Virus record (IMG/VR): IMGVR_UViG_3300049215_000771
Location: 434,001 to 498,000 of that record
Length of the DNA stretch: 64,000 nucleotides
Reading direction: 5' to 3' (one strand)
Below are positions 2,015 through 63,435 of this stretch, in pieces. Below the pieces are notes generated by a model. The model worked only from the letters and a program-made list of their open reading frames with translations, was not told where the DNA came from and ran no database searches. The translations under genes were made by a program, and so were the position numbers. Numbering within the stretch: the stretch's first letter is position 1; each line of letters opens with the position of its first letter.

Positions 2015-2542
2015 TTAGAAGGCTTGTAGCGGCCCGGCATTGCCTCCCAGCGGTGCCTGAGCGTCAGGCGGTGGGCCTCCTGGCGCTGGGGGCGGCGGGC
2101 CGGCTGGCTGCTTCATTGTACCAGGCATTGTATCAGATTTCTTTTTTTCTGGCCCTGCCGTGCCCTTCATTTCTTCCTCACCCTCGGCCTTGTCGTCACC
2201 AGCCAGCTTGTGCAGCGGAACGCCTAGCTTGCCGCTCAATTGCTCTAACTCACTGGCGGCAGAAGAAATAACATTGGGCAGATCATCACGCTCGTCAATA
2301 GCCTTCATGATGGCGACCCCGATCTTCTGGAGATGAATCAGATGTTTCTTCTCCTCACGGGGCCACTGGCTATGCAAAATGCGCCGGATTTGATTGACAA
2401 TTTTCTCCGAGAAGCGGGTCAGGTCACGAGTACCCATGTGTTTGGAGTCGTCTCGCAACTCCTGGGCTGCCGTGAGAATATCACCGATCTTCTGTCCAAG
2501 ATACGCACGTTGTTCAATCAGTAGGAATTCTTTGAACCTCAT
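2015..2542 (-). CDS. Putative internal virion protein with a capsid-targeting-like N-terminus
   Basis: Starts MRFKEFLLIE, resembling T4 internal-protein targeting sequences; Pro/Gly-rich tail; TAAATA 5 nt upstream of the ATG. Confidence 0.5.
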   Translation of the reverse strand: MRFKEFLLIEQRAYLGQKIGDILTAAQELRDDSKHMGTRDLTRFSEKIVNQIRRILHSQWPREEKKHLIHLQKIGVAIMKAIDERDDLPNVISSAASELEQLSGKLGVPLHKLAGDDKAEGEEEMKGTAGPEKKKSDTMPGTMKQPAGPPPPAPGGPPPDAQAPLGGNAGPLQAF

Positions 2543-2546
2543 GCCC

Positions 2547-4175
2547 TTATTTAGAGTTATCTGGCGATATTCTCGTCAAAGCAGCAGCAATCAGCCCACG
2601 AAACAACGGCGCAGCCGCCGTCAGCCGACTTTTGAACTCCGGGTGAGCCTGCGTACCGATGAAATAAGGGTGTAGATTCCTGTCCAATTCCATCATTTCG
2701 ATGAGATCACTGCCTGGGTTTTTCCCACTTACCTTGAAACCTTTCGCCTCGAACTGAGAGATGTATTCCGGGTTGACTTCGTAGCGATGACGATGCCTCT
2801 CCTTCACCAACTTGGTTCCGTACAACTCCATCGCCAAGGAATCTTTCACCAAATCACAATCATAAGCCCCCAGGCGCATGGTGGCAGATTTCTTCTCCAG
2901 ACCCTCCTGGCCCTCTACGAAGTGAATAACAGGGTTCTTGGTGTCCTTGTTGAATTCCAGGCTGTGGGCGTCAACATGCCCCAGCACATTCCTGGCAAAC
3001 TCGATCACGGCGCACTGGAGGCCCAAGCAGATGCCCAGGAAAGGTATTTTCTTCTCTCGGACATACTGAATGGCTTTGATCTTCCCCTCGATGCCCCGAC
3101 TGTCAAAACCTCCGGGAACGATGATGCCATGCAGCCCTTCAAAGTGCTTGGCGAGTCCACGATTGTCTTTGTATTTCTCCAGGTCTTCGGCCTTGATCCA
3201 GCGAACATTCACCTTCACGTCATTGGCAATACCAGCGTGGATCAAAGCCTCCTTCAGCGACATATACGCTTCGTCACAGTTGTCATACTTGCCGAATACG
3301 CCAATCTCAACGCCCTGAAGGTGATTGTTGACGTACTTCTCCACGACTTCCCGGTACTTGTGGATGCTGCACCGGGAACGATTCAGGCGAAACAAATCAA
3401 CAAACATATCATCAACTTGACGTTCGTAGAAGCAAATAGGGACTTGGTAGATCGAGGAAACGTCGGGAGCGTCAAAAACTTGGGTTCGGGGCACGTTGGT
3501 CGTTCGAGACACTTTGTCGATGATTTTTTCCGGTAGCTGGCGGTCCACTCGGCAGAAAATCACATCGGGTTGAAGGCCGTGCCGTTGAAGTTCCTTGACG
3601 GAATTTTGCAAGGGCTTTGTCTTGAACTCCTTGATGGTATTCACCCACAAAATGGGAGCCACCAAAGCAACAAGAACATCGTCCCGGTACTCACCCTTGA
3701 ACTGCCTCATGGCCTCGTAGAAGGCGAAAGACTCACTATCGCCTACCGTCCCGCCAATCTCGGCGATGACTATATCGTTGGATTTTCCCAACTCCAGAAG
3801 CCGGTCCTGAATTTTGTCTGTCAGATGCGGCATGAGTTGGACGGTCTGGCCCAGGAACTTGCCCTTCTCCTGCTCGTCGATCAGTTCCTTGTACAATGTG
3901 CCAGACGTGGCGATATTGTCTTTTGACACAGTGATGCCACAGATGCGCTCGTAGTGGCCCAGGTCCAGGTCTGTTTCTGTACCATCATCGCACAAGAAAC
4001 ACTCGCCATGCTCACGAGGGGCGAGAATGCCGGCATTGACATTGAGGTAGGGGTCGAACTTGATGATGGTGACAGTGTGCCCACGCAGCTTGAGCAGCAA
4101 CCCAAGGCTTGCAGCCGAGACTCCTTTCCCTGTTCCACTGATTACACCGCCAGCCACAATGACGAATTTTGCCAT
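2547..4175 (-). CDS. pyrG: CTP synthase
   Basis: GGVISGTGKG, KFDPYLNV, GICLGLQ (catalytic Cys), RHRHRYEVN and QAHPEF motifs. Start taken at MAKF (4175). Confidence 0.97.
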   Translation of the reverse strand: MAKFVIVAGGVISGTGKGVSAASLGLLLKLRGHTVTIIKFDPYLNVNAGILAPREHGECFLCDDGTETDLDLGHYERICGITVSKDNIATSGTLYKELIDEQEKGKFLGQTVQLMPHLTDKIQDRLLELGKSNDIVIAEIGGTVGDSESFAFYEAMRQFKGEYRDDVLVALVAPILWVNTIKEFKTKPLQNSVKELQRHGLQPDVIFCRVDRQLPEKIIDKVSRTTNVPRTQVFDAPDVSSIYQVPICFYERQVDDMFVDLFRLNRSRCSIHKYREVVEKYVNNHLQGVEIGVFGKYDNCDEAYMSLKEALIHAGIANDVKVNVRWIKAEDLEKYKDNRGLAKHFEGLHGIIVPGGFDSRGIEGKIKAIQYVREKKIPFLGICLGLQCAVIEFARNVLGHVDAHSLEFNKDTKNPVIHFVEGQEGLEKKSATMRLGAYDCDLVKDSLAMELYGTKLVKERHRHRYEVNPEYISQFEAKGFKVSGKNPGSDLIEMMELDRNLHPYFIGTQAHPEFKSRLTAAAPLFRGLIAAALTRISPDNSK

Positions 4176-13335: not shown

Positions 13336-15492
13336 ATGGCAGTTAGCTACGCACAACGAGTTCGGGAAAATACCACGACAACCGGCACAGGGACAATCGA
13401 CCTGGGCGGTGCATCAGCAGGCTACCAGGCTATTTTGGGGGCCGCTGATGACTTTGGCACGATCAATTCCGGCGATACCATCTACTATCTCATTCTCGAT
13501 CAAGTTCACGGCGATTGGGAAGTTGGGCGTGGCACTGTTACATCGGGCAGCCCAAACACCCTCAGTCGAGATGTTGTTTCAGCCAGCAGCAACAGCAACA
13601 GCTTGGTAGACTTCAAATCTGGCACTAAATTCGTTCAACTCCGACAACCAGAACAATACGCCTTCACTCAGCCAGGCAACTTGGTTTTCGCCAGCCCAGC
13701 AGATGGCAGTACAGGCTCGCCCGCCTTCCGTGCCCTGGTAACTGCCGACTTCCCTGCCAGCGGCGCTTCGGCTGCCAGCTATGGTGATGCTACCGACGTA
13801 CCTCAAATCACGGTAGATGCAACAGGAAGGATCACGTCAATAACCACCACGGCCATAACTGGCGTTCCACCAGGAGGGAATGCGGGCGGCGATCTAACAG
13901 GAACTTATCCTAATCCAACACTTATCACCACTGGTGTTGGTGCTGGAACCTACGGCGATGCTACTGATGTACCGCAAATTACTGTCGATGCCAACGGACG
14001 CATTACGTCCGCAACTACTGTAGCTATTTCTGGTGGTTCTCCCACGGGCAGCGCCGGCGGTGACTTGTCGGGAACTTACCCAAACCCAACTGTAGCTCAG
14101 TTGCAAGGCTACCCGGTGTCCAACACAGCCCCAACAGATCAGTATGTACTAACCTGGAGTGCTGGTGGTGGTGCATGGCAACCTGCTGCGGCAAGCGGCG
14201 GTGGCGGAAACACATCTGTAGGCAGCTTGTTGAACGTACAAATTTTCGCCACCAATGGCAGCTATACCTACACGCCAACTACCGGCATGTCTATTTGTAT
14301 TGTTGAATGTGTAGGTTCTGGTGCGGGTGGTGGCGGTGCAACTAGAGGCTCCAGCCAATGTGGGGCCGGTGCCGGTGGCGGTGGTGGCGGGTATTCGAGA
14401 TCGACACTTACTTCTTCTGCAATTGGCAGCAGTCAAACCATCACGGTAGGAGCAGGTGGCAGTGGTGGAGCCAATACAGGCGGCACAGGTAGCAACGGAA
14501 ACCCTTCATCGCTCGGAAGTCTCGTAATCGCCAACGGCGGCACAGGTGGTGCTGGGCAAACAACAGGCTCGGCAGTTGGCATCGTCGCAGGTGGCGCAGG
14601 AGGAACAACAGGTACGGGAGATTTGGCTATCGTCGGTGGCTATGGAGGCCAAGGCATCAGACTTTCTGGTACGGTATGCACCAGCGGACCCGGAGGCGGG
14701 GGTTTTTATTCTCGTTCTGGCCAAAGCCTGAACACCAACGCACAAGGAACAAATGGAATCGGACCTGGAGGCGGGGGCAGCGGCGGCTGCGCCACATCTG
14801 CGAACCAATTGGGTGGCACTGGTGCTGATGGTCTTGTAGTTATTTGGGAATATGGCAATCTGCTGAACGTGCAAATCTTTAACGTCAATGGAAGCTACAC
14901 CTACACACCAACAACCGGCATGAATACTTGTGTTGTTGAATGTCTAGGCTCTGGCGCTGGAGGCGGGGGTGCAACAAGGGGATCAAGTGCTTGTGGTGTT
15001 GGTGCCGGTGGGGGCGGTGGCAGTTACAGCCGGTCTAAACTAACAGCACTACAAGTTGCAGGAGGCCAAACCGTCACAGTAGGAGCAGGTGGCAGCGGTG
15101 GAGCTAACACGGGCGGCACGGGCGGTAGCGGCAATACTTCTTCATTCGGCAGTTTCGTCAGCGCCAACGGCGGTACAGGCGGTGTCGGTATGACAACAGG
15201 CTCCACGGCGGCAATCTCGGCGGGCGGTGCTGGCGGAACAGCAGGCACAGGAGATTTCGCTATTGCTGGCGGCTATGGCGGCAATGGCATTCGGCTCTCC
15301 GGTAGCGTTTGCACAAGTGGTGGTGGCGGCGGCACGGTGTACGGCCCGATTGGTCGTAGCCTAAACGCAAATGCTGTCGGAAGCAATGGCGCTACACCAG
15401 GAGCCGGGGGCAGCGGTGGTTGTGCCATATCTGCCGCCCAGCTAGGAGGAAGCGGCGCTGATGGAATGGTGGTTATTTGGGAATACAGCTAA
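13336..15492 (+). CDS. Glycine-rich tail fibre/structural protein with a duplicated C-terminal domain
   Basis: N-terminal [12 protein letters not shown] motif, GGDLxGTYPNPT repeats and two tandem Gly-rich domains. Confidence 0.7.
14227..15486 (+). repeat. Tandem duplication of a ~209-codon domain (14227-14853 and 14860-15486)
   Basis: Both copies run LLNVQIF...TYTPTTGM...VIWEY, with high amino-acid identity and many synonymous differences. Confidence 0.9.
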
Positions 15493-16168: not shown

Positions 16169-17644
16169 TCACGGTAGGCCCAATTCCTTGCGGGCAACTT
16201 TGTCAATCGGCAAAGGAGCGCCCATCACAGCCGTTCGTCCGCTCGTCGTCGTGGGGAAGGCGATAACTTCCTTCATCGAGTCCTCCTTGCACGCCAACAT
16301 CACCAGTCGGTCAATACCGAGAGCAATCCCTGCGTGTGGTGGAGTGCCGTAGTCGAAGGCTTCCAGCATATGCCCCACGCTGCGTTCGATCTCCGGTTGA
16401 GAATATCCCATTACCTTGTACGTTGCTTCCAGCATCGCCCTGGTATGTGCCCGAACGCTACCTGACCCGATCTCCATGCCGTTGCACACCAGGTCGTACT
16501 GATGAGCAACGATGTCACCCACGTTCTGACCCTGGAGTAGCCAATCACTGTGTTCTTCCAGCGGGGCCGAAAACGGGTTGTGCATGAAGGTCCACGAGGA
16601 CTTGCTGTCCAGCTTATCAACATCTTCCTTCGCCGGCTTGAACATTGGGAAGCGGACGATCCAGCAAAACATCAATGCGCCGGCGTCCTTCTGTGCCTGC
16701 GTCCTGATGTCGGGCTTGTCCGTGCCCCACCGATTCATCGCTTCTTCGTAGGTGAAGATCGGGAAGCTGTTGCCGATGCCGCCGAGATAGGGATAGCGTT
16801 TTAACTGCCCGCCTTCATAGGTCCACGGCTCGTAGAGTTCTTTTTCTTTCTCGTAGTCCCAAATCTTCAGCTTGTAGAAAATAGAACGAACAACTTCCGT
16901 AGCTGTGTGCAACACGCTACTTTCGGTGCCGAAAGCCATTTCCAGGTCAACCTGGGTAAACTCGAAGCCCCGGTCGGAACGAGGAGTCTCGTCCCTGAAG
17001 CACCGAGCAATCTGGTAGTAGGCCGGCACGCCACCCGTCATCAACAATTGCTTGTACTGCTGCGGGCTTTGTGGCAGGGCATAGAACTCGTTGTGGTAGA
17101 GCCGAGAAGGAACAACGAAGTCCCGTGCCCCTTCCTTTGTGGGAGCCGCCAAGATTGGCGTCTCGATCTCCAGAAAACCTCGCCCGTCCAGACACTCACG
17201 GATCGCCTGAAGGGTCTTGGCACGAACCCGAAGGTTGCGTGCCATACGCTTGCGGCGAAGGTCGATGTATCTGTAGCGAAGGCGCTTGTCGATGTCGGTT
17301 TCGTATCCGTCCGACTGAACTGTGATCGGCAGCGGCTTCGTGGCGTTGAGAACTTCGACGTTCCCGACCACGAACTCCACCTTGCCCGTGTACATATCGG
17401 GATTTTCCATGTGTTCAGGGCGGGCTTTCACCTGGCCATGAAACCTCACAACATCTTCGAGATTCAACCCGGCAAGGGTTTTGTTGCGACCGACACACTG
17501 CACGATGTAACCTTCACCATCCCGAAGGTCAATGAAGGTCATTTTGCCGTGGTCACGCTTGGCGTCCACCCACCCCTGGATGGAAAAAAGAGTCGAAGAC
17601 CCCGCCAAACGGACTGTGGACTCAATGCTTGTGTGTTGAGACAT
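16169..17644 (-). CDS. aspS: Aspartyl-tRNA synthetase, compact (GAD domain absent), non-discriminating signature
   Basis: OB fold GWV..KRDHG..FIDLRD; motif 2 QIARCFRDE; GTDKPDIR joined directly to FCWIVRFPMF; motif 3 GIDRL. Start MSQH at 17644. Confidence 0.93.
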   Translation of the reverse strand: MSQHTSIESTVRLAGSSTLFSIQGWVDAKRDHGKMTFIDLRDGEGYIVQCVGRNKTLAGLNLEDVVRFHGQVKARPEHMENPDMYTGKVEFVVGNVEVLNATKPLPITVQSDGYETDIDKRLRYRYIDLRRKRMARNLRVRAKTLQAIRECLDGRGFLEIETPILAAPTKEGARDFVVPSRLYHNEFYALPQSPQQYKQLLMTGGVPAYYQIARCFRDETPRSDRGFEFTQVDLEMAFGTESSVLHTATEVVRSIFYKLKIWDYEKEKELYEPWTYEGGQLKRYPYLGGIGNSFPIFTYEEAMNRWGTDKPDIRTQAQKDAGALMFCWIVRFPMFKPAKEDVDKLDSKSSWTFMHNPFSAPLEEHSDWLLQGQNVGDIVAHQYDLVCNGMEIGSGSVRAHTRAMLEATYKVMGYSQPEIERSVGHMLEAFDYGTPPHAGIALGIDRLVMLACKEDSMKEVIAFPTTTSGRTAVMGAPLPIDKVARKELGLP

Positions 17645-17897
17645 CGTATTCCTCGGTTTCCAAAGGTTCTGTATGTGTTGCCAAAGGCGGCGCAGGGTAG
17701 TGTTCGCACGGAGAAGGCCACCACACAAGTAGCGGCCCCATGACGTTGACTTCCCACCTTCCCCATCGCCCGCCCAAGGCTCGTCTGTAACCACGATACT
17801 CCCAAAAACGACTAGGTTCGCTCGCCTTGCCACGGAGTTTCTTCCAAAGCAAGATCAGGGACCACATGATTGTACTCCGTTTGTTTGAGGTTGTAAA

Positions 17898-19343
17898 TCA
17901 AAAATCAATACCATCTTTGATGATAACCTCGTGACCCTGCTCCTGCAAGATGCGAATTCGTTTCTTGGAGTGATCCAGCAGGTAATCGTTGATGTCGAAC
18001 ACGAAATCGTAGTAATTCAAGCCAGCCTTATCTTCCGCCTTGCGTAGACCTCGGCCCATGCGCTGAACGATTAGGTGATCTGCTTGCCCGCCAGCGGCGT
18101 TGATGAGATTGTGAATGAAAACATTGATGCCTGTGTTGAAGATTTGCTGCGTTGCAATTGCAACAACATCCTGGCTCGATTTCTGAAGCTGCTTGATGAC
18201 ACTTTTCCTGGTTGTCGCATTGTCCTTGCCCTGAACCCACAAGCTGCCAGGAATCAAGCTGTGCAAGGCATCTCCGTGAGCGATGCGATCCACTAAAATC
18301 AACGTCCGGCCTGTTTGTTGGGTCGCCAATCGCTTCACGATGTCGTGGAAGTAGTAGCTTTCAGCAATGCCACGGGTCACGGCATCCATGTAGATGTCAT
18401 GAGGAATTTTTGGTTCGTCGATTGGGTAGAAGATACATTTCGAGGCCGACAAGATGCCACGATTCTGCAATTCCTGTGTTGTCAGGATTCCAGTCGTCGT
18501 AGATTTCTTCAGCTTCAGAACCGGCCCGAAGAAACCTTTGACGTAGAACTTCTGTACTGTGTCCGTCTCGCCAAACTTGAATGGCGTGGCGGACATGGCG
18601 ATCCGTACCGACGCCAACTTCATACGCCTGTACACAGCTTTGGGCATGGCCGACATCATGTCGTGAATTTCGTCAACAATCAAAGCCTTGAACTTTGGCA
18701 GGAGGCGTTCGATTTTCTGTGCCGACTGGACTGTGGCGACTGTGATAAGATTGGGTTTGAACGTACCACCCCAAACCGCCCCGACACCAGGAAACCCCCA
18801 CTGGCAGATTTCATCGTAGTTTTGCTGCGCCAGACCCGCTCGGTTTTGAAGGATCAAAGTAGGAGTGCCTGGAGGCAAAGCCTTCAAAATACCAACCATG
18901 ATGTTGGTTTTACCAGCCGAAGTAGGGGCAAAAACCACGCCTCGGTGGTGTTTGTTGACTAAGTTGATGAATTCAACCTGGTAATCATGGAGGGTGATCG
19001 GGTCTTTGCCTTTCTGGAGCCAGCGGTTGAGAAACTGGTCATCTACCGACTCGATTCCTGTGTTGATACGCTGGCGCTCGTCGATGACCTGGTATTTGAC
19101 TCCCAGCTTATCATCAAGAATAAACTGAACTTCAGGCAGAAGCCCCGTCAGAAACTTTCCTGTCTCGATTTTGAAGAATTCGGTGTAGCCATCCCATAGT
19201 CGTTGTTTGTAACGTCGATTGTGGAAGTAATTCCTTTCACGAAATCGTAGCTTGTCCCACAAGACATGCTTGATACCCATATCATCGGAGATGAAATACG
19301 AGTAGTCATTGCTGATCTTGAGGAGGTTGTTGCTGTTGCTCAT
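17898..19343 (-). CDS. Superfamily II helicase, UvsW-like
   Basis: APTSAGKT, VDEIH, SAT, NTGIN and QRMGRGLR motifs; N-terminal UvsW-like domain. Confidence 0.88.
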   Translation of the reverse strand: MSNSNNLLKISNDYSYFISDDMGIKHVLWDKLRFRERNYFHNRRYKQRLWDGYTEFFKIETGKFLTGLLPEVQFILDDKLGVKYQVIDERQRINTGIESVDDQFLNRWLQKGKDPITLHDYQVEFINLVNKHHRGVVFAPTSAGKTNIMVGILKALPPGTPTLILQNRAGLAQQNYDEICQWGFPGVGAVWGGTFKPNLITVATVQSAQKIERLLPKFKALIVDEIHDMMSAMPKAVYRRMKLASVRIAMSATPFKFGETDTVQKFYVKGFFGPVLKLKKSTTTGILTTQELQNRGILSASKCIFYPIDEPKIPHDIYMDAVTRGIAESYYFHDIVKRLATQQTGRTLILVDRIAHGDALHSLIPGSLWVQGKDNATTRKSVIKQLQKSSQDVVAIATQQIFNTGINVFIHNLINAAGGQADHLIVQRMGRGLRKAEDKAGLNYYDFVFDINDYLLDHSKKRIRILQEQGHEVIIKDGIDF

Positions 19344-19497
19344 TAGTACCTTTGCTCAGTGATGCCAACTGGTTGCGTATCGGGTTGGCGAGGGATATTT
19401 TACCCGATTTGTGCCCCCGGCGTCGAGTCTTCTTCTTGGGTTTTCTTCCACAACACATATTGCCTCCAGGGTATATATGGTCGGGTATAATTACTTC

Positions 19498-19812
19498 ATG
19501 ATCCAGCCGATTCTCGAACTTGATCCTTTGGTGGTGTGCAACCAGAACCGGAAGTTGAAAGCTGTCTGGTCGATGGAAGCACAGCAAGATGTTCGTGCCA
19601 TGCACAACATCCCGGCAGCCAGTGCGCTCGCTGCGCAGATAGCGGCAGAAATCAACGCCGAGATCGACCAGGAAATACTCAACGACTTGAGGAATGCTAT
19701 AAATCCATTCCCACAGTACATCCCACCACCCGCCCCGAAACCTGAAGTGTGGGGCGTCAAGAAGAAAGCCCGCAAGCAGTACCGTTCGATTGATGATCCG
19801 TGGGAGAAGTGA
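19498..19812 (+). CDS. Small protein containing an internal segment of a T4 gp23-like major capsid protein
   Basis: RKLKAVWSMEAQQDVRAMHNI...AEINAEIDQEILNDL matches the recalled gp23 segment R.LKA.(Y/W)S.E.AQDLRA.HG......EI..EI.REI; ends with the RSIDD motif. Confidence 0.65.
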   Translation: MIQPILELDPLVVCNQNRKLKAVWSMEAQQDVRAMHNIPAASALAAQIAAEINAEIDQEILNDLRNAINPFPQYIPPPAPKPEVWGVKKKARKQYRSIDDPWEK

Positions 19813-20265: not shown

Positions 20266-20839
20266 CAAGTTGAACGACCAGCAGGGCATCTTCGACGGCG
20301 GTGTGCGGAGACTCGCCGCCGAGTCCGGCCCGTTCAAGGCACGTTTTGGTATCAGGCAATCCATCATCCTTGCTGGGGTCGAAGTAGAGGATGGACGGGT
20401 CGATGACCCGATGCTTGAAATAAACCTCGTGGTAGTTCTTCTCATCCGGCCAGCGACCGGGGATGTGTTCCTTCAAGAACGGGATGTCGAATCCGGCAGC
20501 ATTTTTGCCGGCGACGTTGACTTCGTACCGCTTCTTTTTCTCGTTGAAAGGGTAGTGAATCTTGTCGAGCCAGTTGACGAGCGACCACATTAGGCCACTG
20601 AGAGGGATCACGTTGTCGCCATCGCCCGGTTTGGCGATTTTCTTGAAAATCGCCGGGTGCATGGACAAAGCATAGGGGTCGCCCCGGTAGACAGACTTCT
20701 TGATATACGCATGGAAGCGAGGAAGTTGGTCGAGCGGCAGCGGGTTGGCAAGGTCGTCGAAGACGGCACCGAACTCGATAATGTCATGAAGTTTGGGTTC
20801 GAGGCCAGTTGTTTCAATATCAAGAGCTATGTAATGCAC
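20243..20839 (-). CDS. DEDDh 3'-5' exonuclease
   Basis: LDIETTGL, AGFDIPFL and HTAVED motifs. Confidence 0.85.
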   Translation of the reverse strand: MHYIALDIETTGLEPKLHDIIEFGAVFDDLANPLPLDQLPRFHAYIKKSVYRGDPYALSMHPAIFKKIAKPGDGDNVIPLSGLMWSLVNWLDKIHYPFNEKKKRYEVNVAGKNAAGFDIPFLKEHIPGRWPDEKNYHEVYFKHRVIDPSILYFDPSKDDGLPDTKTCLERAGLGGESPHTAVEDALLVVQLVRKKLGR

Positions 20840-21504
20840 AAAACACCTTCTTTCGCAGATTTGAACAGTCTCTCGGCTTCCTTCTTATCCAACACCACGA
20901 CCCGCACCGGCTTGATGTGGTCGTTGGTGTAGCATATCTTCTTCCACTGCTTGTCGCAATAGATACCTTCACTTGTTTTGTATCGTCCTTGAGCAACACG
21001 GAGCGTAAATTCGCTTTTGATTTCTATGAAACTTTCTGATTCCTCGAAGTCTGGCTTGTAAGTTCCATGAGGGGTGCGCAGCCGGCGACGACATAAACTA
21101 GGCAAAGGCATCTGATTCTCGAAAAGATGTTGCAAATACGCCACTTCGTACTTGCCGAGAACCTTACCAACGACTGTTTGATAGGTTCTTGACTTGCCAA
21201 TGATCGCTTCTCGATTGCCTTTTCGCCATGATTTCCGGCCAGAAGCAGCGATTTGTTTCTTTGAGGCCGCTGTGTGATGGCGACCACTAAACCCTGGAGT
21301 CGAGCCGTATACCTGCCTTATTGTCTTGCTTATATCCGACCTGGATATAGAATCAACACCCCACTTAGCAAGCCAGTAGGCGATATTGTAATCCGAGCGT
21401 CCAAACAACGATCCGATATATTTCTTCCCCCGGTGTTCTACAGTGTAGAGTCTAATGATTTCAGCTTTTTCCTCTTCGGAGAAGCCGCCTTTGTGTGCTG
21501 CCAT
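20827..21504 (-). mobile_element. Free-standing putative homing endonuclease (HTH + NUMOD3-like + PD-(D/E)XK)
   Basis: FSGRHHTAASKKQI NUMOD3-like motif; YKPDF...FIEIK nuclease motif; more AT-rich than neighbours; own TATAAT and GGAGG. Confidence 0.65.
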
Positions 21505-21656
21505 GATGTCCTCCAGAACATTATAGGGCAGCCACAATAAGTTTCAATATCAATAGATGAAACCAATATCAATGGATACATACTTCATTGAAGTTACTCC
21601 TGTGTATAGGCGACCTCGCTATGTTATATTTTCCTCACAACGAAGGGAATACCAAA

Positions 21657-22463: not shown

Positions 22464-23003
22464 ATGCTTGACGAATGGTTCAAATGCGCAGTGTGCGGAT
22501 CGAAAGAAGCACCCATCATGAGCATGGGGTACATTTCCCAATGCTATTGTCGAGATTGCGCCGACAACAAAAAAGAAGATTGCAACGCAGCCTTCAAGAA
22601 GGTCCACGACGAAGCTGTGCTTGAAGAAGCCTTTCGCCCCAAAATCAAACACGATGAAATTGACGTGAGAGATGATTACTTTCAGTACATCGTACAAAAC
22701 AAACAAGAACCAGAACTGGAGATGTGCTTCAGGAGAATTGCCGAGCAGGTGTACCTTCTAAAAACTACCACCAAGAAAGATTGGCATAACAACTGGCGCT
22801 GGATTCCTTTCATCGAAAACGTCGATAAAGGGACGTGGCAAGAAGTCCCCAAAGATTTTGTGGAGGCGGCGATCCCGTATTGTTACGACAGGTTGAAAAC
22901 ATACGATGCAGGCAGGGCCACAGCGAAAGATTACTTCACTGCGGCCTGCTGCGGTTTGTATGAGTATGCAAAACTGCACAACTGGCGAGATTGGGCGTAC
23001 TAA
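22464..23003 (+). CDS. Hypothetical protein with an N-terminal CxxC...CxxC
   Basis: CAVC...CRDC zinc-finger-like pattern. Confidence 0.5.
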   Translation: MLDEWFKCAVCGSKEAPIMSMGYISQCYCRDCADNKKEDCNAAFKKVHDEAVLEEAFRPKIKHDEIDVRDDYFQYIVQNKQEPELEMCFRRIAEQVYLLKTTTKKDWHNNWRWIPFIENVDKGTWQEVPKDFVEAAIPYCYDRLKTYDAGRATAKDYFTAACCGLYEYAKLHNWRDWAY

Positions 23004-24421
23004 TACAACTTCCGGTCTTCCGCCTCAAGAATCTTGCCCAAGTTGGGAAAGAAAATTTCCCACCACTCCGTCATCTCGTGCATGATGTCCTGGAGAGTGT
23101 CATAGATTGGGGTTTTCTTGCACTCCTCAATCCACTTGTCACAGTAGGTGTGCCAGAAGAAGTCCGTGAGGGTCTTCAAACCCAGCGGCCAGTTCAGGTC
23201 GTGTTCGATGTAGGTTTGTAATCTCCCAGCGGTCTTGATCCACTCCAGGTAGTATTCCTGGTTCTCTCCCCCAGGACAACCTGGCTCCCAATCCTCCAGC
23301 CCCCACTTCCCATTGCCGTGGATGAACCTGTAGGCATTGACCAGCTTGTTGAGCAGGGCTTTGCCTTTCTTCATGACGGCTTCATCACAGCGGGTGTCCG
23401 TGCCGACCTGGTTGCACGCCGCCCAATAACGAACACCCTCCATGCCGTACTTCTCAACGTAGACGTGCGGCTCGACGAAGTTGCCCGCCGTTTTGCTGAT
23501 CTTGTGGCCGTGCTTGTCCAGGGCGTGGCCGCTGATAATGATTTTCTTCCACGGAACCTGATCGCTGTGATAGAGACTTTTGACGATGGTGAAGAATGCC
23601 CACGTCCTGATGATGTCGTGCGCCTGGAACCTGGCGTCGAAGATCGGGGGATGAAGGGTAGGAATCTTCGTGTGTGCCGCCCACGTCATCTGCGGCGACA
23701 AGCTGGAAGTAAACCAGGTGTCAAAAACGATGTTGTCGGGTTCCCCCGGAATGTGGATGCCGTAGTTACGCTCACGGGAAATAGACCAATCCATCGTGAG
23801 GCCATCCAGCCAGCGATGCAGCCGCTCCTGAAAGACCTTGGGATGCCACTGGATCAGGTCGATAGCCTGCCTGAGACGGTCCAGGTGGTCACGGATGTTG
23901 ATGAACCAGCCCTCGCCTGTCCGTAGCTCGACTTTCTCACCAGAACGCTCGTAGCGGCCTTCCTCGTCGATCTCGGCCTGAGAAACGGAGACACGGGTTT
24001 TGGGGCACCAGAAATAGTCCCTGACGGCTTTGTAGGCGTAGCCCTTCTTGACCAGATCGTGGAACGACATCTCGGCCAAGGCGATGGCGTGGCGGTCATA
24101 GGTGTGGTAGTGATGCTTGCTCCAGCCCATGCCGATTTGTTGGAACAAGTCGGAGTACATCTTCGACGTATTCTCGGCAAACCTGACGATACCGGGCGTA
24201 TCGAAGATTTTGTCCTTCTGTGCCAACTTCTCGGTCGGCAGGCCGTTGCAATCAAAACAGAAAGGGTACAGAAGGGGGTCTTCCTTCTGGCCATCTTCGG
24301 TGAGATGGAAACGCTTGGCCCTGGCAACAAAGTCCATGTGGCAGTACGAGAAAACATGGCCCATATGCAACAGGCCAGAGATCGTCGGCGGCGGAACGTC
24401 GATAAGGTATTTTGGGTCCAT
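23000..24421 (-). CDS. valS: Valyl-tRNA synthetase-like, minimal (CP1 editing domain and C-terminal coiled coil absent)
   Basis: PPPTISGLLHMGH (HIGH), DCNGLPTE, DWSISR, QAHDIIRTW and KISKTAGN (KMSKS). Start MDPK at 24421. Confidence 0.85.
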   Translation of the reverse strand: MDPKYLIDVPPPTISGLLHMGHVFSYCHMDFVARAKRFHLTEDGQKEDPLLYPFCFDCNGLPTEKLAQKDKIFDTPGIVRFAENTSKMYSDLFQQIGMGWSKHHYHTYDRHAIALAEMSFHDLVKKGYAYKAVRDYFWCPKTRVSVSQAEIDEEGRYERSGEKVELRTGEGWFINIRDHLDRLRQAIDLIQWHPKVFQERLHRWLDGLTMDWSISRERNYGIHIPGEPDNIVFDTWFTSSLSPQMTWAAHTKIPTLHPPIFDARFQAHDIIRTWAFFTIVKSLYHSDQVPWKKIIISGHALDKHGHKISKTAGNFVEPHVYVEKYGMEGVRYWAACNQVGTDTRCDEAVMKKGKALLNKLVNAYRFIHGNGKWGLEDWEPGCPGGENQEYYLEWIKTAGRLQTYIEHDLNWPLGLKTLTDFFWHTYCDKWIEECKKTPIYDTLQDIMHEMTEWWEIFFPNLGKILEAEDRKLY

Positions 24422-24604
24422 GCCAGATGATACTACGATTTTGTGAGTTTGTAAGGTCGCAATTGTTTTTCGGTGAGCGGTATCCACGGCAAATCGGGAC
24501 GATTTTCCATGCACCCGCCACAAGGACGAGAAACGTCCTTGTGGCAGGGATGGACTCTATCTTCCGGGAGGAAACCCACGTCCTTGGCGTATCTCCAAGG
24601 ACAT

Positions 24605-35954: not shown

Positions 35955-37100
35955 TCACTTGCCATATTTATGTCTGCTCCCGTAAACATGGGGCACAAAC
36001 CGAGAAAGATTGCCGGTGATGATGGAGTCGTCTTCTCGGATGCCGACGCCACAAGCCCATCCGTTGATGATCCAGCTTCCAATGCAGGGGTGCTTGCCAT
36101 CGAAGTTGGGCAATTCCCAAATCTGCTGGTAGATGCCGGGTCCGTCGTATGGTCCCTCAGTTTTCAGGTACAACTTGCCATGCTCGAAAATCTGAATGTT
36201 CGCTCCCTCCCGGCTGAAAATCGGCTTCTTGACGTAGTTGCCGTCAGCGGGTGGGTCGAAAGTTGTACGAAGCAGGTTCGGATGGTCAGGGAACAACTCC
36301 CAAAGGACAGGAAGGATCGCCTTGTTGGAAAGGATGGCTTTCCACGGCGCTTCCAGCCAATTCGTAGTTCGCTCCAGGACCATCGGGCCAAACTGCTCCC
36401 GTTGCATCCATTCCCAGGGATATAACTTGAAGCAGTTGGTGATTTCGTTTTCGTCCAGGTCAGTGAAAACCCGGCGTTCGGGATGCCAGCCGATGTTCTC
36501 AACGTCGATGTAAGCCGTCTCCCAGCCCGCTTGCGTGGCGACATCACGGAGATAGTTGACGTTCATGTAGTCTTCGACGTGGCCGGCAAGGGCGGCGAAG
36601 TACATGATTCCAGGGCGTTGAGTCTTGACGGCTTTCCAGGCTTCGATCAGCCGCTCGTGAATGCTGTTGAACTGGTTCCTGGTGGGGAATTTGTCGTTCA
36701 ACCAAAACCACTGGCCCACGGCGGCTTCCAGCAACCCGGTTGGAGTATCTGCGTTGTACTCCAACATCTTCGGCTCGTAAGACCCATTGAACACAAGATC
36801 GAACCGACCGTAGATGGTGTGTTCGTCGTTCTCCCAGGAGTCCCGAATGTACTGGCGAAACTCACGAGGAATGAGGAACTGATCGAAACGGTCTTCGTCG
36901 ATGACGTGCTGAATCGCCTCCAGGCAGATACGATTCAACTCGTAAGTTGCGGCTTCAAGCTGGTCCACTTCCTGTGGCGTGAACTCGTAGTAAACACTCT
37001 CGTCCCAATAAGGCACGCCGTCTACCGTGTGGTAGTACATGCCCTGGGATTCGACTGTTTTCTGCCAGTCGGGACGAACATCCGTTGTGTGCCGTTGCAT
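35955..37100 (-). CDS. Glutathionylspermidine-synthase-like ATP-grasp protein (YgiC/YjfC type)
   Basis: YWDESVYY, YGRFD, KMLEYNADTPT, KLYPWEW, EAPWKAILSNK, VKKPIFSREG and IGSW...G.GIRED motifs. Confidence 0.92.
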   Translation of the reverse strand: MQRHTTDVRPDWQKTVESQGMYYHTVDGVPYWDESVYYEFTPQEVDQLEAATYELNRICLEAIQHVIDEDRFDQFLIPREFRQYIRDSWENDEHTIYGRFDLVFNGSYEPKMLEYNADTPTGLLEAAVGQWFWLNDKFPTRNQFNSIHERLIEAWKAVKTQRPGIMYFAALAGHVEDYMNVNYLRDVATQAGWETAYIDVENIGWHPERRVFTDLDENEITNCFKLYPWEWMQREQFGPMVLERTTNWLEAPWKAILSNKAILPVLWELFPDHPNLLRTTFDPPADGNYVKKPIFSREGANIQIFEHGKLYLKTEGPYDGPGIYQQIWELPNFDGKHPCIGSWIINGWACGVGIREDDSIITGNLSRFVPHVYGSRHKYGK

Positions 37101-44236: not shown

Positions 44237-45960
44237 GACATCACTGAGGGCAGGCCGGACTAATATGGTCGAACCACAACGGGGCCGGCTCACAATTCCC
44301 GATATTGACGAGACGCTGAACTGCACCGTCATCTTTGTGGATCGAAAAACTCACACCGCAAACCAGCGACATGGCTGTATACTCAATGCCAGTCGTATCC
44401 AGGTAAGCCTTCACACCTTTCTGTTGCTCGTCGGCGTGATCCTTGCGCCATTGTCTTTTGTCGTAAACGCCTGCGGGCACGTCATCCGGGTCGTCGAAAT
44501 GAAGGTACACGTCAAGCCGATCACCATCATCCTCGACATGCCTCCGCAGATGCGGCGTACACCGCTTTTCCTGGGCTGCCCATTCAGCAAGTGTCATGTT
44601 GGCCTCAGTTTCATCCTCGCCCGTAATGCCAGCCTGCTTTTCAGCAACGGGCTGTCCTGGCGAGTCTTCCTTTCGTCGTTATCGTCGATGCTCCTGTGTT
44701 GCTTCTCTCCGACAACCACCAAGTCATCGGGATTGTAACCATAACGAAGGTTACTCGGCTGCCACCGCACATCCACTTCCGGCCCCTGGAAGGTTCCGTA
44801 GTCCAGAAGCCCATCCACAACGCCGATGCAATCACCAAACTCTTCAATATGTTCAGCGCAACCATTGCCGATCATGGCCTGCTTGAGTTCTTCCGACATT
44901 CTTACTAGGGTGCCAGGTTTCATAGCTTCTCAATCTGCTTACAAAGGTCACGAAGGAACCTGTTCCTCCTGGCTTCGATTGCCTCCCGAAGCATCGACAC
45001 GAGTGCGCCGCCGTGATCCTGAACCGTCACCCGCCCCATCTCCCAGCCTCCCCTGGAGAGAATATGGAAGCTGTCGTCTACACTAAAAGACGCCTCAGCC
45101 CGCTCAAGGTTCAGATTAAAAACTTCCGGCTCGCCCCCGCTGGTGTGCCAGATGAAGCGGTCTTCGTTGGTTGCGTGGACCAACTCTTCGAGGATGACGG
45201 AAACTTTCTCGGTGTCAAGTAACGGCATCTTGCGTCTTCTCGTGCTTCAAGCAATGGTAGTGTTCCAGACCACGGGTCGGGAAAACGTAGTACCCACAGT
45301 GTTCCGTGAAGACAGCAATTTCTTCTCGCTGCTCGTCACGCACCAGGAAAGCGTAGTTGAAGAACATATTCGAGCCGTCCTCAAACTGGATCGACACGAA
45401 CGAATTGAACTGGCTCAGGTCGAACCAGTTGTTCTTCTTGATGTAGTCCTGCCAGTGTTTGGGCAAGTTGTTGAAAAACTTGTCAATGACGTTCATTTCT
45501 TCTTCCTGTATCGACCGTCGATCTCTTCTTCCCGGAACTCATCCACCACGTTTTTCTCGACGTGATGGAGTTTGTACCAGTGTTCCTTATGGATTCCAGT
45601 TGTGTAGCGACCGACGACCACGGCAATTGCGCCATTCCAGTAGTAGGGCGTCTGGCCGTCCTTGGATCGTCCCTTCAGGACACGAACTTTCTGACCTGGC
45701 TCGTACAAATAGGGTTTAGGGTCCGGGCGGTTGTATGCTTTCACCAACAGGTCCATGAAGGTGTCGCTCATACCTCAGTCAACTCCAATCCAAGGTCTTC
45801 ACACAACTCGCTGGCAGCCTCCATCGAGCGGTTGTAGACCGTTTTACCTTGCCGATCATTGATGAACAATTCACCGCCGTTGTAGTAGCCAGCAAGTCCA
45901 TGATCGGATTTCTTACAGGCTTCACGCAATTGTTTCAGCGCCAACATTATCTTCTCCTTG

Positions 45961-46473: not shown

Positions 46474-46938
46474 GACATATTGTAGTAGCCTGGCTGTAGA
46501 AAACTACGGCGTGTCTTCCTTTTTTTCTCGTTCCTTCTGGATCGACTCCATAATGGAGTTGGTGAAAGCATACCCGCATCTGGTACATTTCCACATGCGC
46601 TCGCTTTCTGGAGCCTTGTACGGATCGGCGTACCGATCTTCCATGTATTCCAGGTCCAGTTCACAATCACCGCCGCAGATGCAACAAGTCGTGTCATGTA
46701 GCATCGTCGATGCTCCTGTGTTTCTTGTTGACCACCACTTCGATGGGATCAACACAAACAACACTCCCATCTGCCAGTTCCACAATTATACAAAGACCGT
46801 GGGAGTCGTGGTACTCTCGAACGTACCCGACTCCCTCCACCGGCTCTCCGTGATGTTCTGTGTCGTATTCGTTGCCGTTGGTGCCTCGGAAGTATACCGT
46901 TTTACCAACGGCATCACGACACTTCTCCCACAAATTTC

Positions 46939-48141
46939 TCATTTCTTCAACACCACCGAAGAACCATCGCTCCGATCCCGAATCTCACAACCCAGGTCGA
47001 TGATCCTTCTTTTCAGGGCATCGGCCCCAGCCCAATTTCGCTGCCGCCTGCATTCCTCTCGGAGTTTGGCAAGCTGGATGGCGTCGTCGGGAGCATCCTC
47101 ATCCGAGAACATCTGGAAACCGAGTAATTCGGCTTGCTCCAGGCTGGGATTCACGAAAGTCGCTGCGATGGCTTCCGAAGTATTCAGGTTGGCGTCCATC
47201 GCCTTGGCGAAATCTTCCGAAACTCCATGTTCTGGTGCCGACTTCAGCCGATTCCTCAAAGCCTTCCACTGTTGCGCCGAAGTCCCATCCAACAACCCTT
47301 CAACGGATAAAGGTTTGGCATAACTGGCCGAGAGAATCCAGAAGCGAATCACGTTGGGGTCCGTGCCATTCGCCCGATAGTCCCGGATGTTGACGGCGTT
47401 CCCCTCGGATTTTCCCATCCTCCTGTCGCCGATCTGAACCATCCCATTGTGGAGCCAGATGTCCGCCAAGGGCGATCCGGCATGAAGGCATTCGGACTGA
47501 GCGATCTCATTCTCGTGATGCGGAAACTTCAAATCGTCGCCGCCCACATGAATATCCACCGTGAACCCAATGGTCCTTTCAATCATGATGGAGCATTCAA
47601 GATGCCAACCAGGTCGCCCCTTGGGGAATTCAGACTCATTGGCCTTCGGCCCCTTCCACAAAACGAAATCTTCCGCCGTTTTCCGACGTGAAAGTTTCCC
47701 ATATCCAGGGAACGTCTTCGTTTTGAAGCGAATGTCGCCATCTTTGTGGTAAGCATGGCCACTTTCGACAAGCGCCGTAGCTGCAACCTTCATCGGGATC
47801 ATGTAGTCCGTCACACGGGGGTACAAGTCCGCCTTCTGGACGTTCAGCCAGCCCATGTCATTGAAATAGTCGTCGATGAAGCGGTCAGCCAGTTCTTTGC
47901 TGGTCACGCCCTCCTTTGCCGCCCGATCCACGATTTTGTCGTCCACGTCCGTAAAATTCTGAACGTGGTAGACCTTCTGCCGGCGTTTGAGCCAGCGTTT
48001 CAGCACGTCCCACACAACATAGCTCCTGGCGTGTCCCAGGTGGCAGTAGTCGTAGACCGTTACACCACAAGCGTACATAGTGATCGGGCGGTCACTAGGG
48101 ACTTCTTTTTCACGCCGGGTTAGGGAGTCGTGCAGTTTCAT
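46939..48141 (-). CDS. cysS: Cysteinyl-tRNA synthetase (compact)
   Basis: YACGVTVYDYCHLGHARS, NFTDVDDKI, GRPGWHLECS, FPHHENE and MGKSEGN motifs; start MKLHD at 48141. Confidence 0.95.
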   Translation of the reverse strand: MKLHDSLTRREKEVPSDRPITMYACGVTVYDYCHLGHARSYVVWDVLKRWLKRRQKVYHVQNFTDVDDKIVDRAAKEGVTSKELADRFIDDYFNDMGWLNVQKADLYPRVTDYMIPMKVAATALVESGHAYHKDGDIRFKTKTFPGYGKLSRRKTAEDFVLWKGPKANESEFPKGRPGWHLECSIMIERTIGFTVDIHVGGDDLKFPHHENEIAQSECLHAGSPLADIWLHNGMVQIGDRRMGKSEGNAVNIRDYRANGTDPNVIRFWILSASYAKPLSVEGLLDGTSAQQWKALRNRLKSAPEHGVSEDFAKAMDANLNTSEAIAATFVNPSLEQAELLGFQMFSDEDAPDDAIQLAKLREECRRQRNWAGADALKRRIIDLGCEIRDRSDGSSVVLKK

Positions 48142-50208: not shown

Positions 50209-50291
50209 TGTCCAAGGTGGGAGTCGAACCCACAAGTCCTTGCGGACGCCAGCCCCTCAAGCTGGTGCGTTTACCGTTTCGCCACTTGGAC
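50209..50291 (-). tRNA. tRNA-Leu(GAG), long V arm
   Basis: CCAGC-TTGAGGG-GCTGG, A73. Confidence 0.92.
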
Positions 50292-51477
50292 AAAAATCGT
50301 CGTCTATGCTTCTCCAATCTTTCGGTTTTGCTGGTGGAAGTTTGCGAGCAAACCTCCCGTAATGCCTTTCGTCTACCACAAGACCGCCCCAGCCTTTACC
50401 AAACCATCGCTTCCCGGTCCATTCTTTGTCTTCCGGTCGGACGGTTTCACCAACTTCAAGAAACCGATACCCTGGAGGCGGTTTTCTCATCTTGCACCTG
50501 AACAAAACACGTCCCTGGAGGCAAGTAGAAACTTTTCACCCTCCATGTCATTTCCGGCAGGACGTATTCGATCTCAATGATCCTACCTTCTTTCACCAAC
50601 TCATCCAGTAAGTCGGGCACGTCGATGTCGTTCATCGACAGCTTCGTGACCACTTCCTCGTCCGCAGCAAGCTGCGTTGCTTTGCACCCCTGAAGGGAGA
50701 TGATCTTGTCCACAAGAAACTGCTTGGCCTCGTCCCTATTCATCGTCGATACTCCGGTACTTGCGTTGCTTTGGTGTTGGTTCGGGCTTCTTCCGAATCA
50801 ATTCTATATCAACTTCCCAACAAGTACCAGGACTACCATCACGAATTGACTTGACGTTATATGCCGCCATCGGCTCCCCGCCACGACCATCCAGACCGCA
50901 TCCATATCCATTGCACGGAACATACCTGTCCGTGATCTCACATTCGCTGTAGTCACGGCCCGACGCCAGTTCGGGACTGGCCCATTTTCCTGATGATGGC
51001 AAAATCCGAATGATGTCGCCTACCTCGAACTTGTAGAGGTAAAACGGCGGGTTATTGTGCGGGGGATACGGGTTGGGTGGCACTGGCATTGTCTTGTCTC
51101 CTTGCACAGACAGGACAAAGCATAACATAATGCTTGGACTTTGGCAACCTCACCATTTTCCAGCCATCTTTTTCGCCCCAACCGCCACTTTTCTTACTGC
51201 CCCCAAGCGGTTGCTTCCGTGTGCAGGTGTGACACTTGAGCGTGCTATGTTTCTTGAAGCCCATCTAACCACTCCCTGAACGAGAGTTTCTGAAACGTGT
51301 TGATCGGGCGGCTGGGGTCTTGAAGTAACTTCTGAACCTCACGCTGCCCCGTGCTGCCCGTCAAATCCTTCCAGGCTTTCTCCCTGGTTTGTCGGGCGTA
51401 TTTCTTGAAGACACCAGACAGGCTCGACGCCATGTCCACGATAGCCTTCTTGATATTTGTGTCAGGCGTTTTCTTCG

Positions 51478-57735: not shown

Positions 57736-57826
57736 TTGGCAAGGTGGGATTCGATACCCACACGGTAGATTCGTCAACCTACCAACCCCCTCTAGCGGGG
57801 GCTGCGTCTTCTTCCGCCACTTGCCA
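57736..57826 (-). tRNA. tRNA-like RNA with an aberrant anticodon loop (GCTAGA) and 8-nt T loop
   Basis: TGGCAAG/CTTGCCA, A73; CCCCC-GCTAGA-GGGGG; 8-bp V arm; GTGGG-TATCGAAT-CCCAC. Confidence 0.6.
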
Positions 57827-57903: not shown

Positions 57904-58347
57904 AATTCTCTGGCTATGACAATTAGGACATAGAAACTGCAAGTTTTCTTTCCTGTTGTCGAGCCAGTTATCGTTCTTGTGGTCAACTTCCAACACCAAC
58001 GGTTTGCCGTTCCATACATCCGTTTGACCACAACACGCACATTTATACTCAACTCCCGATTCGATCAATGCCCGCCGCAGCATATACCCGTGAGTTCTGC
58101 GGTCGCCCTCGGACAACACCAGTATTTCAGACCAGTGCTTCTTCAGTCCGTTCGTCAATCCCTTCCGTGACGCTTGCCCCAAAAAATGAGTCGTATCAAT
58201 CTCGTATCTTTTGAGAAGAGCCTTAATATGCGATTGACTCCCCCCGGTCAGCTTGAGGCCCAACATTCGCAAAACATCACGAATGCAAATGGACTCCTTG
58301 GCAATTTCCCCAAGCAACTCTTTGGTGTATTTCGTCTTGTTTCCCAT
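57868..58347 (-). mobile_element. Free-standing HNH endonuclease whose ORF ends inside tRNA-Leu(GAG)
   Basis: Paralogue of 46027-46473; LEVDHKNDNWLDNRKENLQFLCPNCH; TGcTATAAT 6 nt before the ATG. Confidence 0.85.
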
Positions 58348-59198
58348 GAAGACATTATAGCAAACATATCTGTCATTTGCAAGTAATGTCTTCCAGTCTC
58401 GTGTACTGCCAGAAGTAAATGCTACCCTTGTCGCTGTTCAACTTGTTCAGCCGCTTCACTTCCGCTTCTGCCCGTTCCGGCGTCGGAACTACCTTCTTCA
58501 CCGTGAGTCGCATCTTCAACTCGTCCGGCGTCAGTTTCACCGCTCCCGACGCTATCTCGGTTGGTTCTAAGTCCAGCCTCAGTACGGCGTAAGCAGGGGC
58601 TAGGGGAATCATCGAACAACAACCTCATGTAATTGTCCACTGTTCTCGTCTGAATCTGACCGCCTCTCTCGAAGCGGTCCCACTGTTTTTCAGAGATACC
58701 AGTAAACTCATCGCTCGTCATCGCCGACTTCCCGGAGGGTGCGGTCGGCTTTTTCGATCTTGTCGAAGTCTTCGTTGTAGAGGGCGAACCGGATTTCTTG
58801 CGTTTCGTCATTGGAAAGTACCGCCCGGATTGGGAAGTCAACCACAATGGTCGTCGGTTCCTCCAGTTCCACGCTGGCCTCGTCGCCTTCTTCCTCCGCA
58901 GGCATGTCGATCCGCATGAACTGAGAAAGATTGATGGTATAATCCAACAAGTGCGGCTCGGCTTCCGCCATCTCAACCAAATCACGCAGTTTCATGTTTT
59001 TCCTTATCGTGGATGCGCCACCCAGGACGTTCCTTGTAGAGAATGTCGTTGATGGCATCGCCGTAAACAAACCCCGCCTTCGCCTCGGTCGTCATCAGGC
59101 TGTGGGAAAGTTCTTCCAACTCGCTCACCATCTCCTGATAGTCCTGAACGACTGCGATCAGTTCTTCCTTGGTCAGTTCGTGCAGTTGTCGTTGCATG

Positions 59199-63080: not shown

Positions 63081-63435
63081 AAACATCACTCAATCTCACT
63101 GACAAATTCTACACGTCGCCCACGTCGTTTAACATCCTTGTTCAAATCAATTCTCATCCAGCAGTATTGCCCGGTCGATATTCCCATTTCAGCCAGGTAC
63201 TTCTGGCACGCTTCGACGATTTCACTTTCCGTCAGGGTCACGACCGCCTTCTTATTGCCCTTCGCTTTGCGGAATCGCATCGTCGTCAATGCTCCGGTAC
63301 TTCGGCTTCTTCAGCAGCGGCTTGCCATCCCACAATCGCTTCAGATTTTCCCACTCCCACACAGTCCTGGCTCGTAGCTCGAAGGCTTCTTCCAGGTTCC
63401 AGCCCGCCGCCCGAAGGTTGGCGATTTCTTCCTCG

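Follow-up and report, generated by a model that had tools for sequence, protein, structure and literature searches.

The window analysed here is a 64,000-nt stretch comprising bases 434001-498000 of the 532,729-bp IMG/VR virus record IMGVR_UViG_3300049215_000771, which derives from an uncultured huge phage in a moss metagenome and which IMG/VR labels 'provirus'. Within the window, a small gene that we refer to as F2 encodes a 104-aa protein and lies in the order AspRS, DEAD/ResIII helicase, F2, a 115-aa ORF and an RNase T-like exonuclease, i.e. among replication and translation genes rather than in the head module. An identical protein is encoded on a 673-kb contig. The F2 protein has three parts: a segment matching the T4-type major capsid protein (MCP), a variable Pro-rich linker, and a short C-terminal tag that is shared with many other ORFs of the same phage. 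The positions of these and other features are listed in Table 1.

Table 1. Positions of the features described in the text (W, window coordinates; G, coordinates in the 532,729-bp record; L153, a relative carrying type B tags).
Position	Strand	Frame	Feature
13336-15492	+	W	718-aa glycine-rich repeat protein (Pfam Gly_rich_2)
16169-17833	-	W	Aspartyl-type (class II) aminoacyl-tRNA synthetase
19306-19458	-	W	50-aa very basic ORF (MCCGRKPKKKTRRRGHKSGKISLANPIRNQLASL...) with a perfect GGAGG-N4-ATG
19483-19491	+	W	-10-like promoter element GGGTATAAT, 6 nt upstream of the F2 ATG
19498-19812	+	W	F2 ORF, stop included (ATG at 19498, TGA at 19810-19812)
19534-19695	+	W	F2 capsid-derived segment ('bait'), residues 13-66; MCP 257-310, 32/54 identical
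19696-19758	+	W	F2 Pro-rich linker, residues 67-87 (NPFPQYIPPPAPKPE...)
19759-19809	+	W	F2 C-terminal tag: basic run KKKARK followed by QYRSIDDPWEK (tail KKKARKQYRSIDDPWEK)
20827-21537	-	W	236-aa ORF between the exonuclease and the glycosyltransferase; no Pfam match
23000-24523	-	W	Class I (Met/Ile/Leu/Val-type) aminoacyl-tRNA synthetase
28234; 40955; 48141	-	W	ATGs preceded by a promoter-like GG(G)TAnnAT, as at 19483-19500
44594-44929	-	W	ORF with the tag motif internally (HRSIDDND..., about 28 residues from its end); uncertain
46694-46984	-	W	Tagged ORF (...NKKHRSIDDAT, stop); stop-to-stop coordinates; no Pfam match
50257-50505	-	W	ORF with a tag variant 13 residues from its end (...KPKDWRSIDDDFCPSGETVNAPA, stop); no Pfam match
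50736-51149	-	W	Tagged ORF (...KQRKYRSIDDE, stop); stop-to-stop coordinates; no Pfam match
57736-57826	-	W	tRNA with anticodon CTA
63252-63539	-	W	Tagged ORF (...KKPKYRSIDDDAIPQSEGQ, stop); no Pfam match
13759-14031; 18099-18464; 36315-36992		G	Pieces or truncations of a gp32-type SSB
58150-58437		G	F1; MCP 55-102, 42/48 identical
338843-340279		G	Full Gp23-type MCP gene, 478 aa
351369-351617		G	F4; MCP 403-448, 28/46 identical
517817-518062		G	F3; MCP 318-368, 41/51 identical
518270-518509		G	F5; MCP 438-463, 18/26 identical
524328-524810		G	160-aa Cys-rich paralogue covering MCP 307 to the C-terminus
2444-3457	-	L153	Actin-like protein (Pfam Volactin / MreB-like) next to the terminase

Residues 16-66 of F2 match positions 146-196 of the 376-position Pfam profile PF07068 (Gp23), with an E value of 1.1e-12 and a score of 48.5 bits against a cut-off of 24.4, and they match PHROG 138 (major head protein) with an E value of 3e-12. 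The initial annotation, which described a mini-protein of this length with its own -10 element, about 50 gp23-like residues, a Pro-rich linker and a terminal RSIDD, is confirmed as an observation. One correction is needed, because that annotation took the capsid-like segment to be the most conserved part of gp23; by position, the block usually given that description is the Gol region, a conserved 29-residue block in the first quarter of gp23 (PMC3014915), whereas F2 aligns to residues 257-310 of the 478-aa MCP, and it is F1, a sister mini-protein elsewhere in the genome, that carries the Gol-equivalent block. By homology to T4 gp23, the F2 segment corresponds to the strand plus spine-helix region of the P domain. 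Since only this part of the HK97-type fold (N-arm, P and A domains) is present, F2 is a fragment and not a capsid protein. An AF2 model made with the family alignment has predicted helices at residues 10-35 and 38-68, followed by an unstructured linker and tag (mean pLDDT 75.5).

Partial gene duplicates are common in large phage genomes, and we considered whether F2 is a chance ORF or a decaying partial copy of the capsid gene, neutral decay having been named beforehand as an outcome that would overturn the original reading. This possibility is refuted. A length-restricted search of 5.8 billion proteins returned 14 other proteins of 85-116 aa with 40-88% identity to F2, and their alignment shows a conserved N-terminal capsid-like block, conserved start and stop, a linker that varies in length and sequence and is absent from three orthologues, and a conserved tail in which Y95, R96, I98, D99, P101 and W102 are each retained in at least 90% of sequences. 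Against the 88%-identical orthologue, dS is 0.76 and dN/dS is 0.09 (0.05 in the capsid-like block), and against a 63%-identical orthologue dN/dS is 0.19; the linker has the highest dN/dS of the gene's regions against orthologue P0005, at 0.30, and a value of 0.12 against orthologue P0002. The gene order around F2 is conserved in a relative whose F2 is only 61% identical. Hence, F2 is a real gene under purifying selection.

The -10-like element upstream of F2 is invariant in four orthologous loci, and the 180 nt upstream of the gene are highly conserved, including GG(G/A)TATAAT-N6-ATG. There is no Shine-Dalgarno sequence, so the mRNA is probably leaderless or nearly so. A generic sigma-70 scan did not call this element because no -35 is present. 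Nonetheless, the same arrangement, GG(G)TAnnAT-N5-7-ATG, precedes about 14 ORFs of 40 aa or more genome-wide (Table 1, and about 10 sites elsewhere in the genome), as compared to 1-3 in shuffled sequence, suggesting a class of promoters that give leaderless or near-leaderless transcripts. Metatranscriptome contigs (runs X5-X8) hold only sparse, read-sized pieces of neighbouring genes and none over F2, which is too little to bear on its expression or 5' end. The 50-aa basic ORF upstream of F2 diverges from it and overlaps the start of the helicase gene; this ORF is conserved in four relatives, its DNA is more conserved than the F2 coding sequence, and it has no Pfam match.

The initial annotation did not recognise that F2 is one of a set. 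The genome has one full Gp23-type capsid gene, next to an S77 prohead protease gene and a putative scaffold gene, together with four small Gp23-matching ORFs, and a fifth such ORF and a tagged paralogue of the C-terminal half of the MCP were found by BLAST. By local alignment, at least five scattered mini-genes (F1 to F5) carry different, nearly abutting segments of the capsid protein (Table 1), and together these cover the best-conserved blocks of the family while leaving out the variable regions 103-256 and 369-402. One reading of this arrangement is that the fragments constitute a second capsid gene in pieces, re-associating non-covalently with the help of the tags into a capsid-like fold such as a special vertex protein. 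Indeed, the segments barely overlap (257-310 and 318-368; 403-448 and 438-463), the 160-aa tagged paralogue extends from MCP residue 307 to the C-terminus, and there is no separate gp24-like vertex gene. However, we consider this reading very unlikely, since two regions of the MCP have no fragment, relatives carry different subsets, duplicates (two F1 copies in tandem) and permuted fusions, minimal family members keep only 18-25 residues, and the pieces are scattered over 460 kb. T4-like phages also have genes split by homing-endonuclease insertion, such as nrdA and gene 43, in which separate ORFs cover consecutive segments of a gene. In the present genome, by contrast, an intact full-length gene coexists with pieces that are scattered, incomplete, and duplicated or permuted in relatives, and each piece has acquired a linker and a tag. 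We reject a homing-endonuclease origin because the 236-aa ORF near F2 has no Pfam hit and is missing from the syntenic locus of a relative that keeps F2 (L149); this ORF is present in the near-identical contig L150, and hence represents an insertion/deletion, possibly of a mobile gene.

All five fragments end in a basic run followed by YRSIDDPW[ESQ]. Genome-wide, the core motif [YWFH]R[STN]ID[DEA] occurs 41 times, and 36 of these occurrences lie within 12 residues of the C-terminus of an ORF; the reversed motif does not occur, and five shuffled genomes gave 0-1 occurrences. On average, 3.4 of the eight residues preceding the motif are Lys or Arg, and 13 tags continue with P[WF]. Five tag-bearing ORFs other than F2 lie in the window, one of which is uncertain because the motif is internal. 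Tagged genes often stand in tandem with ATGA stop/start overlaps. All synonymous codons for R, S, I, D and P are used, and the DNA downstream of the stop codons is unrelated, which shows that conservation is at the protein level and that the tail is not a DNA repeat or mobile-element end. A 12-mer shared upstream of two tagged ORFs (TTGCCTCCAGGG) is not a general motif.

Profile scans of 35 tagged proteins against Pfam and PHROG found only pieces of Gp23, S77, PrkA and SSB, with the remainder being ORFans. The tagged S77 protein is a 156-aa copy of the prohead protease core, 39% identical to the real enzyme, in which a Pro replaces the His of the DHP motif and Lys-Met replaces the Ser-Ser of the SSRG motif; these His and Ser residues are the catalytic residues in T4 gp21, and we infer that the copy is catalytically dead. 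The gp32-type SSB exists in this record only as three tagged pieces or truncations, including a 225-aa SSB-like protein, and one ORF strings together a gp32-tail-like peptide (DNIDDLLKDLY), the tag, and a middle SSB segment; relatives have a normal 350-363-aa SSB plus a short tagged paralogue. Two tandem ORFs are fragments of the PrkA C-terminal domain (E value 3.6e-10), whereas relatives have a full-length PrkA. We found no full-length SSB or PrkA in the 532-kb record, although these may lie in the roughly 140 kb of the 673-kb contig that is not in the record. Lastly, two tagged proteins have a transmembrane helix and a zinc ribbon.

Pattern scans and protein searches identified tagged F1-, F2- and F4-type proteins on many metagenomic contigs of up to 477 kb. 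A protein-pattern scan of IMG/VR was dominated by full-length capsid genes and served only as a source for the MCP alignment, and a homologue search with F4 returned only F4 itself because too few words were shared; F4 orthologues were found with a DNA pattern instead. F1 alone has about 100 small homologues, and the 44 that we read share the bait FKRISIPLVRRIYPQLIANKIVSVQP..., followed by a linker and one of two tag types. Type A variants include YRSIDDPWE, WRDITEPWEPS and WRPIDDPFEP, whereas type B is xNWxxEGF at the very C-terminus. A related 158-kb record (G008) has three overlapping capsid-fragment genes ending in DVDWVKEGF, one of which carries the F5-like segment before the F4-like segment; this record has eight ORFs ending in W[VI]KEGF-stop and no type A tag, and the present genome has no type B tag. 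Another relative has a zinc-ribbon protein that simply ends in the capsid motif FFDAGYFYCPFVPLS, and read-through of TAG after the fragment in the genome designated G006 gives no tag. The baits are therefore portable modules, and each genome uses one tag type.

The capsid proteins of three genomes are 90-96% identical and are identical in the F4-equivalent segment, yet their F4 proteins are only 53-64% identical in the bait. In a tree of the 69-residue segment, 13 of 16 F2 proteins form one clade (support 85/83), with branches roughly ten times longer than those of the capsid segments. The fragments are therefore old, are not homogenised by gene conversion, and evolve fast. Even so, the 13 invariant positions of the F2 family all carry the capsid residue, and they include R262, L264, A266, D275, H280, L288 and E299, which are seven of the eight columns invariant across the whole Gp23 alignment in this stretch.

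What the analysis itself establishes is that the architecture is conserved and under purifying selection, that the tag closes at least 36 ORFs of this phage, that at least four other tagged mini-proteins carry other MCP segments, that further tagged proteins are truncated or dead copies of other self proteins, and that a related lineage uses the same baits with a different tag. Everything that concerns mechanism, i.e. binding of the bait to capsid protein, binding of the tag to a receptor, and any presence of tagged proteins in proheads or virions, is inferred from sequence alone. We reason that a bait keeping exactly the residues that the capsid family cannot change most simply contacts what the parent segment contacts, which would make F2 a binder of capsid protein, either unassembled or at subunit interfaces; a fragment of a self-assembling protein is a cheap binder for that protein, and the same logic would apply to the SSB, protease and PrkA pieces, since all derive from self-associating proteins. 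A single co-fold of the MCP (39-row alignment) with F2 (15 rows) gave an ipSAE of 0.01, a score that counts neither for nor against an interaction. A tag that is uniform within a genome but replaced in a sister lineage behaves like a sorting or docking signal for one co-evolving, probably phage-encoded, receptor, most likely part of the prohead core or shell. We tentatively propose, as the most likely of several possibilities, that F2 is an internal-head or head-assembly-modulating protein that bridges capsid protein to this receptor. The tag would then be a C-terminal functional analogue of T4's capsid-targeting sequence, or of the C-terminal tails of HK97 protease, herpesvirus scaffold and encapsulin cargo.

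The nearest precedent is the capsid-targeting sequence of T4. This phage shares with T4 a Gp23 MCP and an S77 prohead protease, and the T4 internal proteins (IPI-III, Alt) are likewise many small, otherwise unrelated, fast-evolving proteins that share only one short terminal peptide (PMC3012670; PMC5694885). However, the T4 sequence is N-terminal, 10-20 aa long, and ends in a Glu site cleaved by gp21, whereas the tag described here is C-terminal with a basic run and an aromatic-RSIDD(PWE) core; some family variants read I-T-E-P or I-D-E-P, but Pro follows, and there is no evidence that the tag is cleaved. F2 is thus not a protein with a capsid-targeting sequence in the strict sense, and no T4 internal protein is known to be a capsid fragment. 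A speculative extension is that the core I-x-[DE]-P resembles a T4-type protease site, with cleavage after Glu (PMC5694885), made uncleavable by Pro, in which case the prohead protease itself would be a candidate receptor. Short C-terminal peptides that follow a flexible linker, are shared by several proteins and direct them to the inside of an HK97-fold shell are found in HK97 protease, herpesvirus scaffold/protease and encapsulin cargo; there is no sequence similarity to the tag, and the number of tagged proteins here is far larger. We note that encapsidation alone does not explain why capsid fragments should be cargo, that F2 sits among replication and translation genes and not in the head module, and that the transmembrane proteins and the 225-aa SSB-like protein fit a general docking or degradation signal equally well.

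Indeed, an alternative possibility, less likely in our view, is that the tag is a hub-docking signal or degron unrelated to the capsid interior, recruiting about 40 small proteins to one phage machine, such as an unfoldase/protease, a cytoskeletal or factory scaffold, or a replisome hub. The self-fragment baits would then tether or time-limit MCP, SSB, protease and PrkA, for example by holding them inactive until the tagged inhibitor is removed. The diversity of tagged proteins, the co-variation of tag type with lineage and the replication/translation neighbourhood of F2 are consistent with this model. Moreover, SSB C-terminal tails are acidic-aromatic motifs that dock on partner proteins, and the type B tag DVDWVKEGF-COOH resembles the tail of the relatives' full-length SSBs (ADDDFMKELG...). 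On the other hand, this similarity extends over only a few residues, the type A tag has a basic run, does not need a free C-terminus (0-12 residues follow it) and occurs on dozens of proteins that are not SSBs, no candidate receptor was identified, and degrading or tethering one's own capsid protein has no obvious benefit.

The initial annotation proposed that F2 is a capsid-epitope decoy or an assembly modulator, citing anti-phage systems that sense capsid protein. This interpretation is partly supported, in that F2 is a selected mini-protein built from an internal capsid piece, but no result separates a decoy from an assembly modulator. In a decoy model, the mini-proteins would display the most conserved linear segments of phage proteins recognised by bacterial immune sensors, occupying or mis-routing the sensors, with the tag sequestering the complex or sending it to degradation. 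The baits come from classes of phage protein reported as immune triggers, namely capsid (CapRel, PMC9712102; Lit/Gol, PMC3014915) and prohead protease (CBASS, PMC12991175). SSB has also been reported as a trigger. Lit is activated by a short linear gp23 peptide, so linear capsid peptides can be sensor ligands, but Gol is neither a separate gene nor tagged, and the analogy fits F1 rather than F2. The roughly ten-fold faster evolution of the fragments relative to the MCP is expected in an arms race, and permuted or concatenated baits fit epitope display better than fold reconstitution. Nonetheless, a free copy of an activating epitope should trigger a sensor rather than block it, we found no homology to defence or anti-defence systems, the low dN/dS gives no sign of positive selection, PrkA is not a known trigger, and the model does not explain the roughly 25 tagged ORFans, the membrane proteins, or the need for a tag. 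We consider a decoy function possible but unlikely, on a par with the hub or degron model. Even less likely is that the fragments are weapons against co-infecting relatives, poisoning assembly or replication as dominant negatives. Truncated subunits of self-assembling proteins are classic dominant negatives, and the baits are the blocks shared by the whole MCP clade, but the phage's own MCP is the closest target (the F1 bait is 88% identical to it), such that self-poisoning would have to be avoided, and nothing in this model explains the tag.

In searches of 8.4 million papers and preprints for the tag motifs and for capsid-fragment decoys, we found no description of capsid-fragment mini-proteins or of this tag, and the phenomenon appears new in kind, although its mechanism is inferred only. 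The broadest reading, which we consider possible but somewhat less likely than not, is that huge T4-related phages run a proteome-wide 'bait-and-tag' system, in which short fragments of self-assembling proteins are re-used as affinity handles and fused through flexible linkers to a lineage-specific C-terminal address tag read by one receptor. This would be a natural analogue of engineered adaptor/degrader or cargo-loading designs and a new class of phage regulators, with capsid-fragment proteins such as F2 as its founding members. If so, phages would build binders for their own machines by copying pieces of about 50 residues; a single short tag would sort roughly 5% of the ORFs of a half-megabase phage, giving an experimental handle on an unknown sorting, packaging or degradation machine; capsid assembly, or capsid sensing by bacterial immunity, would be modulated by dedicated capsid-derived peptides; and such tags could be used to load cargo into phage heads or to recruit proteins in engineered phages. 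This reading also gives a rule for annotating the many small 'Gp23' ORFs in metagenomes, about 100 for fragment F1 alone, that are now labelled capsid protein or hypothetical.

A scan of bacterial genomes found no host protein with the tag, returning only chance internal hits and phage-like contigs binned into Acidobacteriota MAGs. The latter carry tagged capsid-fragment genes and include contig CAVSYW010000005.1 (933 kb) and loci in a Chloracidobacterium MAG, hinting that the hosts are Acidobacteriota or that huge-phage contigs are mis-binned. The phage encodes the aminoacyl-tRNA synthetases listed in Table 1, and a relative also has GatB nearby. The window contains 14 tRNA genes, including one whose CTA anticodon reads the TAG stop (labelled 'Pyl' by ARAGORN); stop-codon use among long ORFs (TGA 306, TAA 187, TAG 112) shows no obvious recoding. 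A relative that carries type B tags, L153, encodes an actin-like protein next to its terminase.
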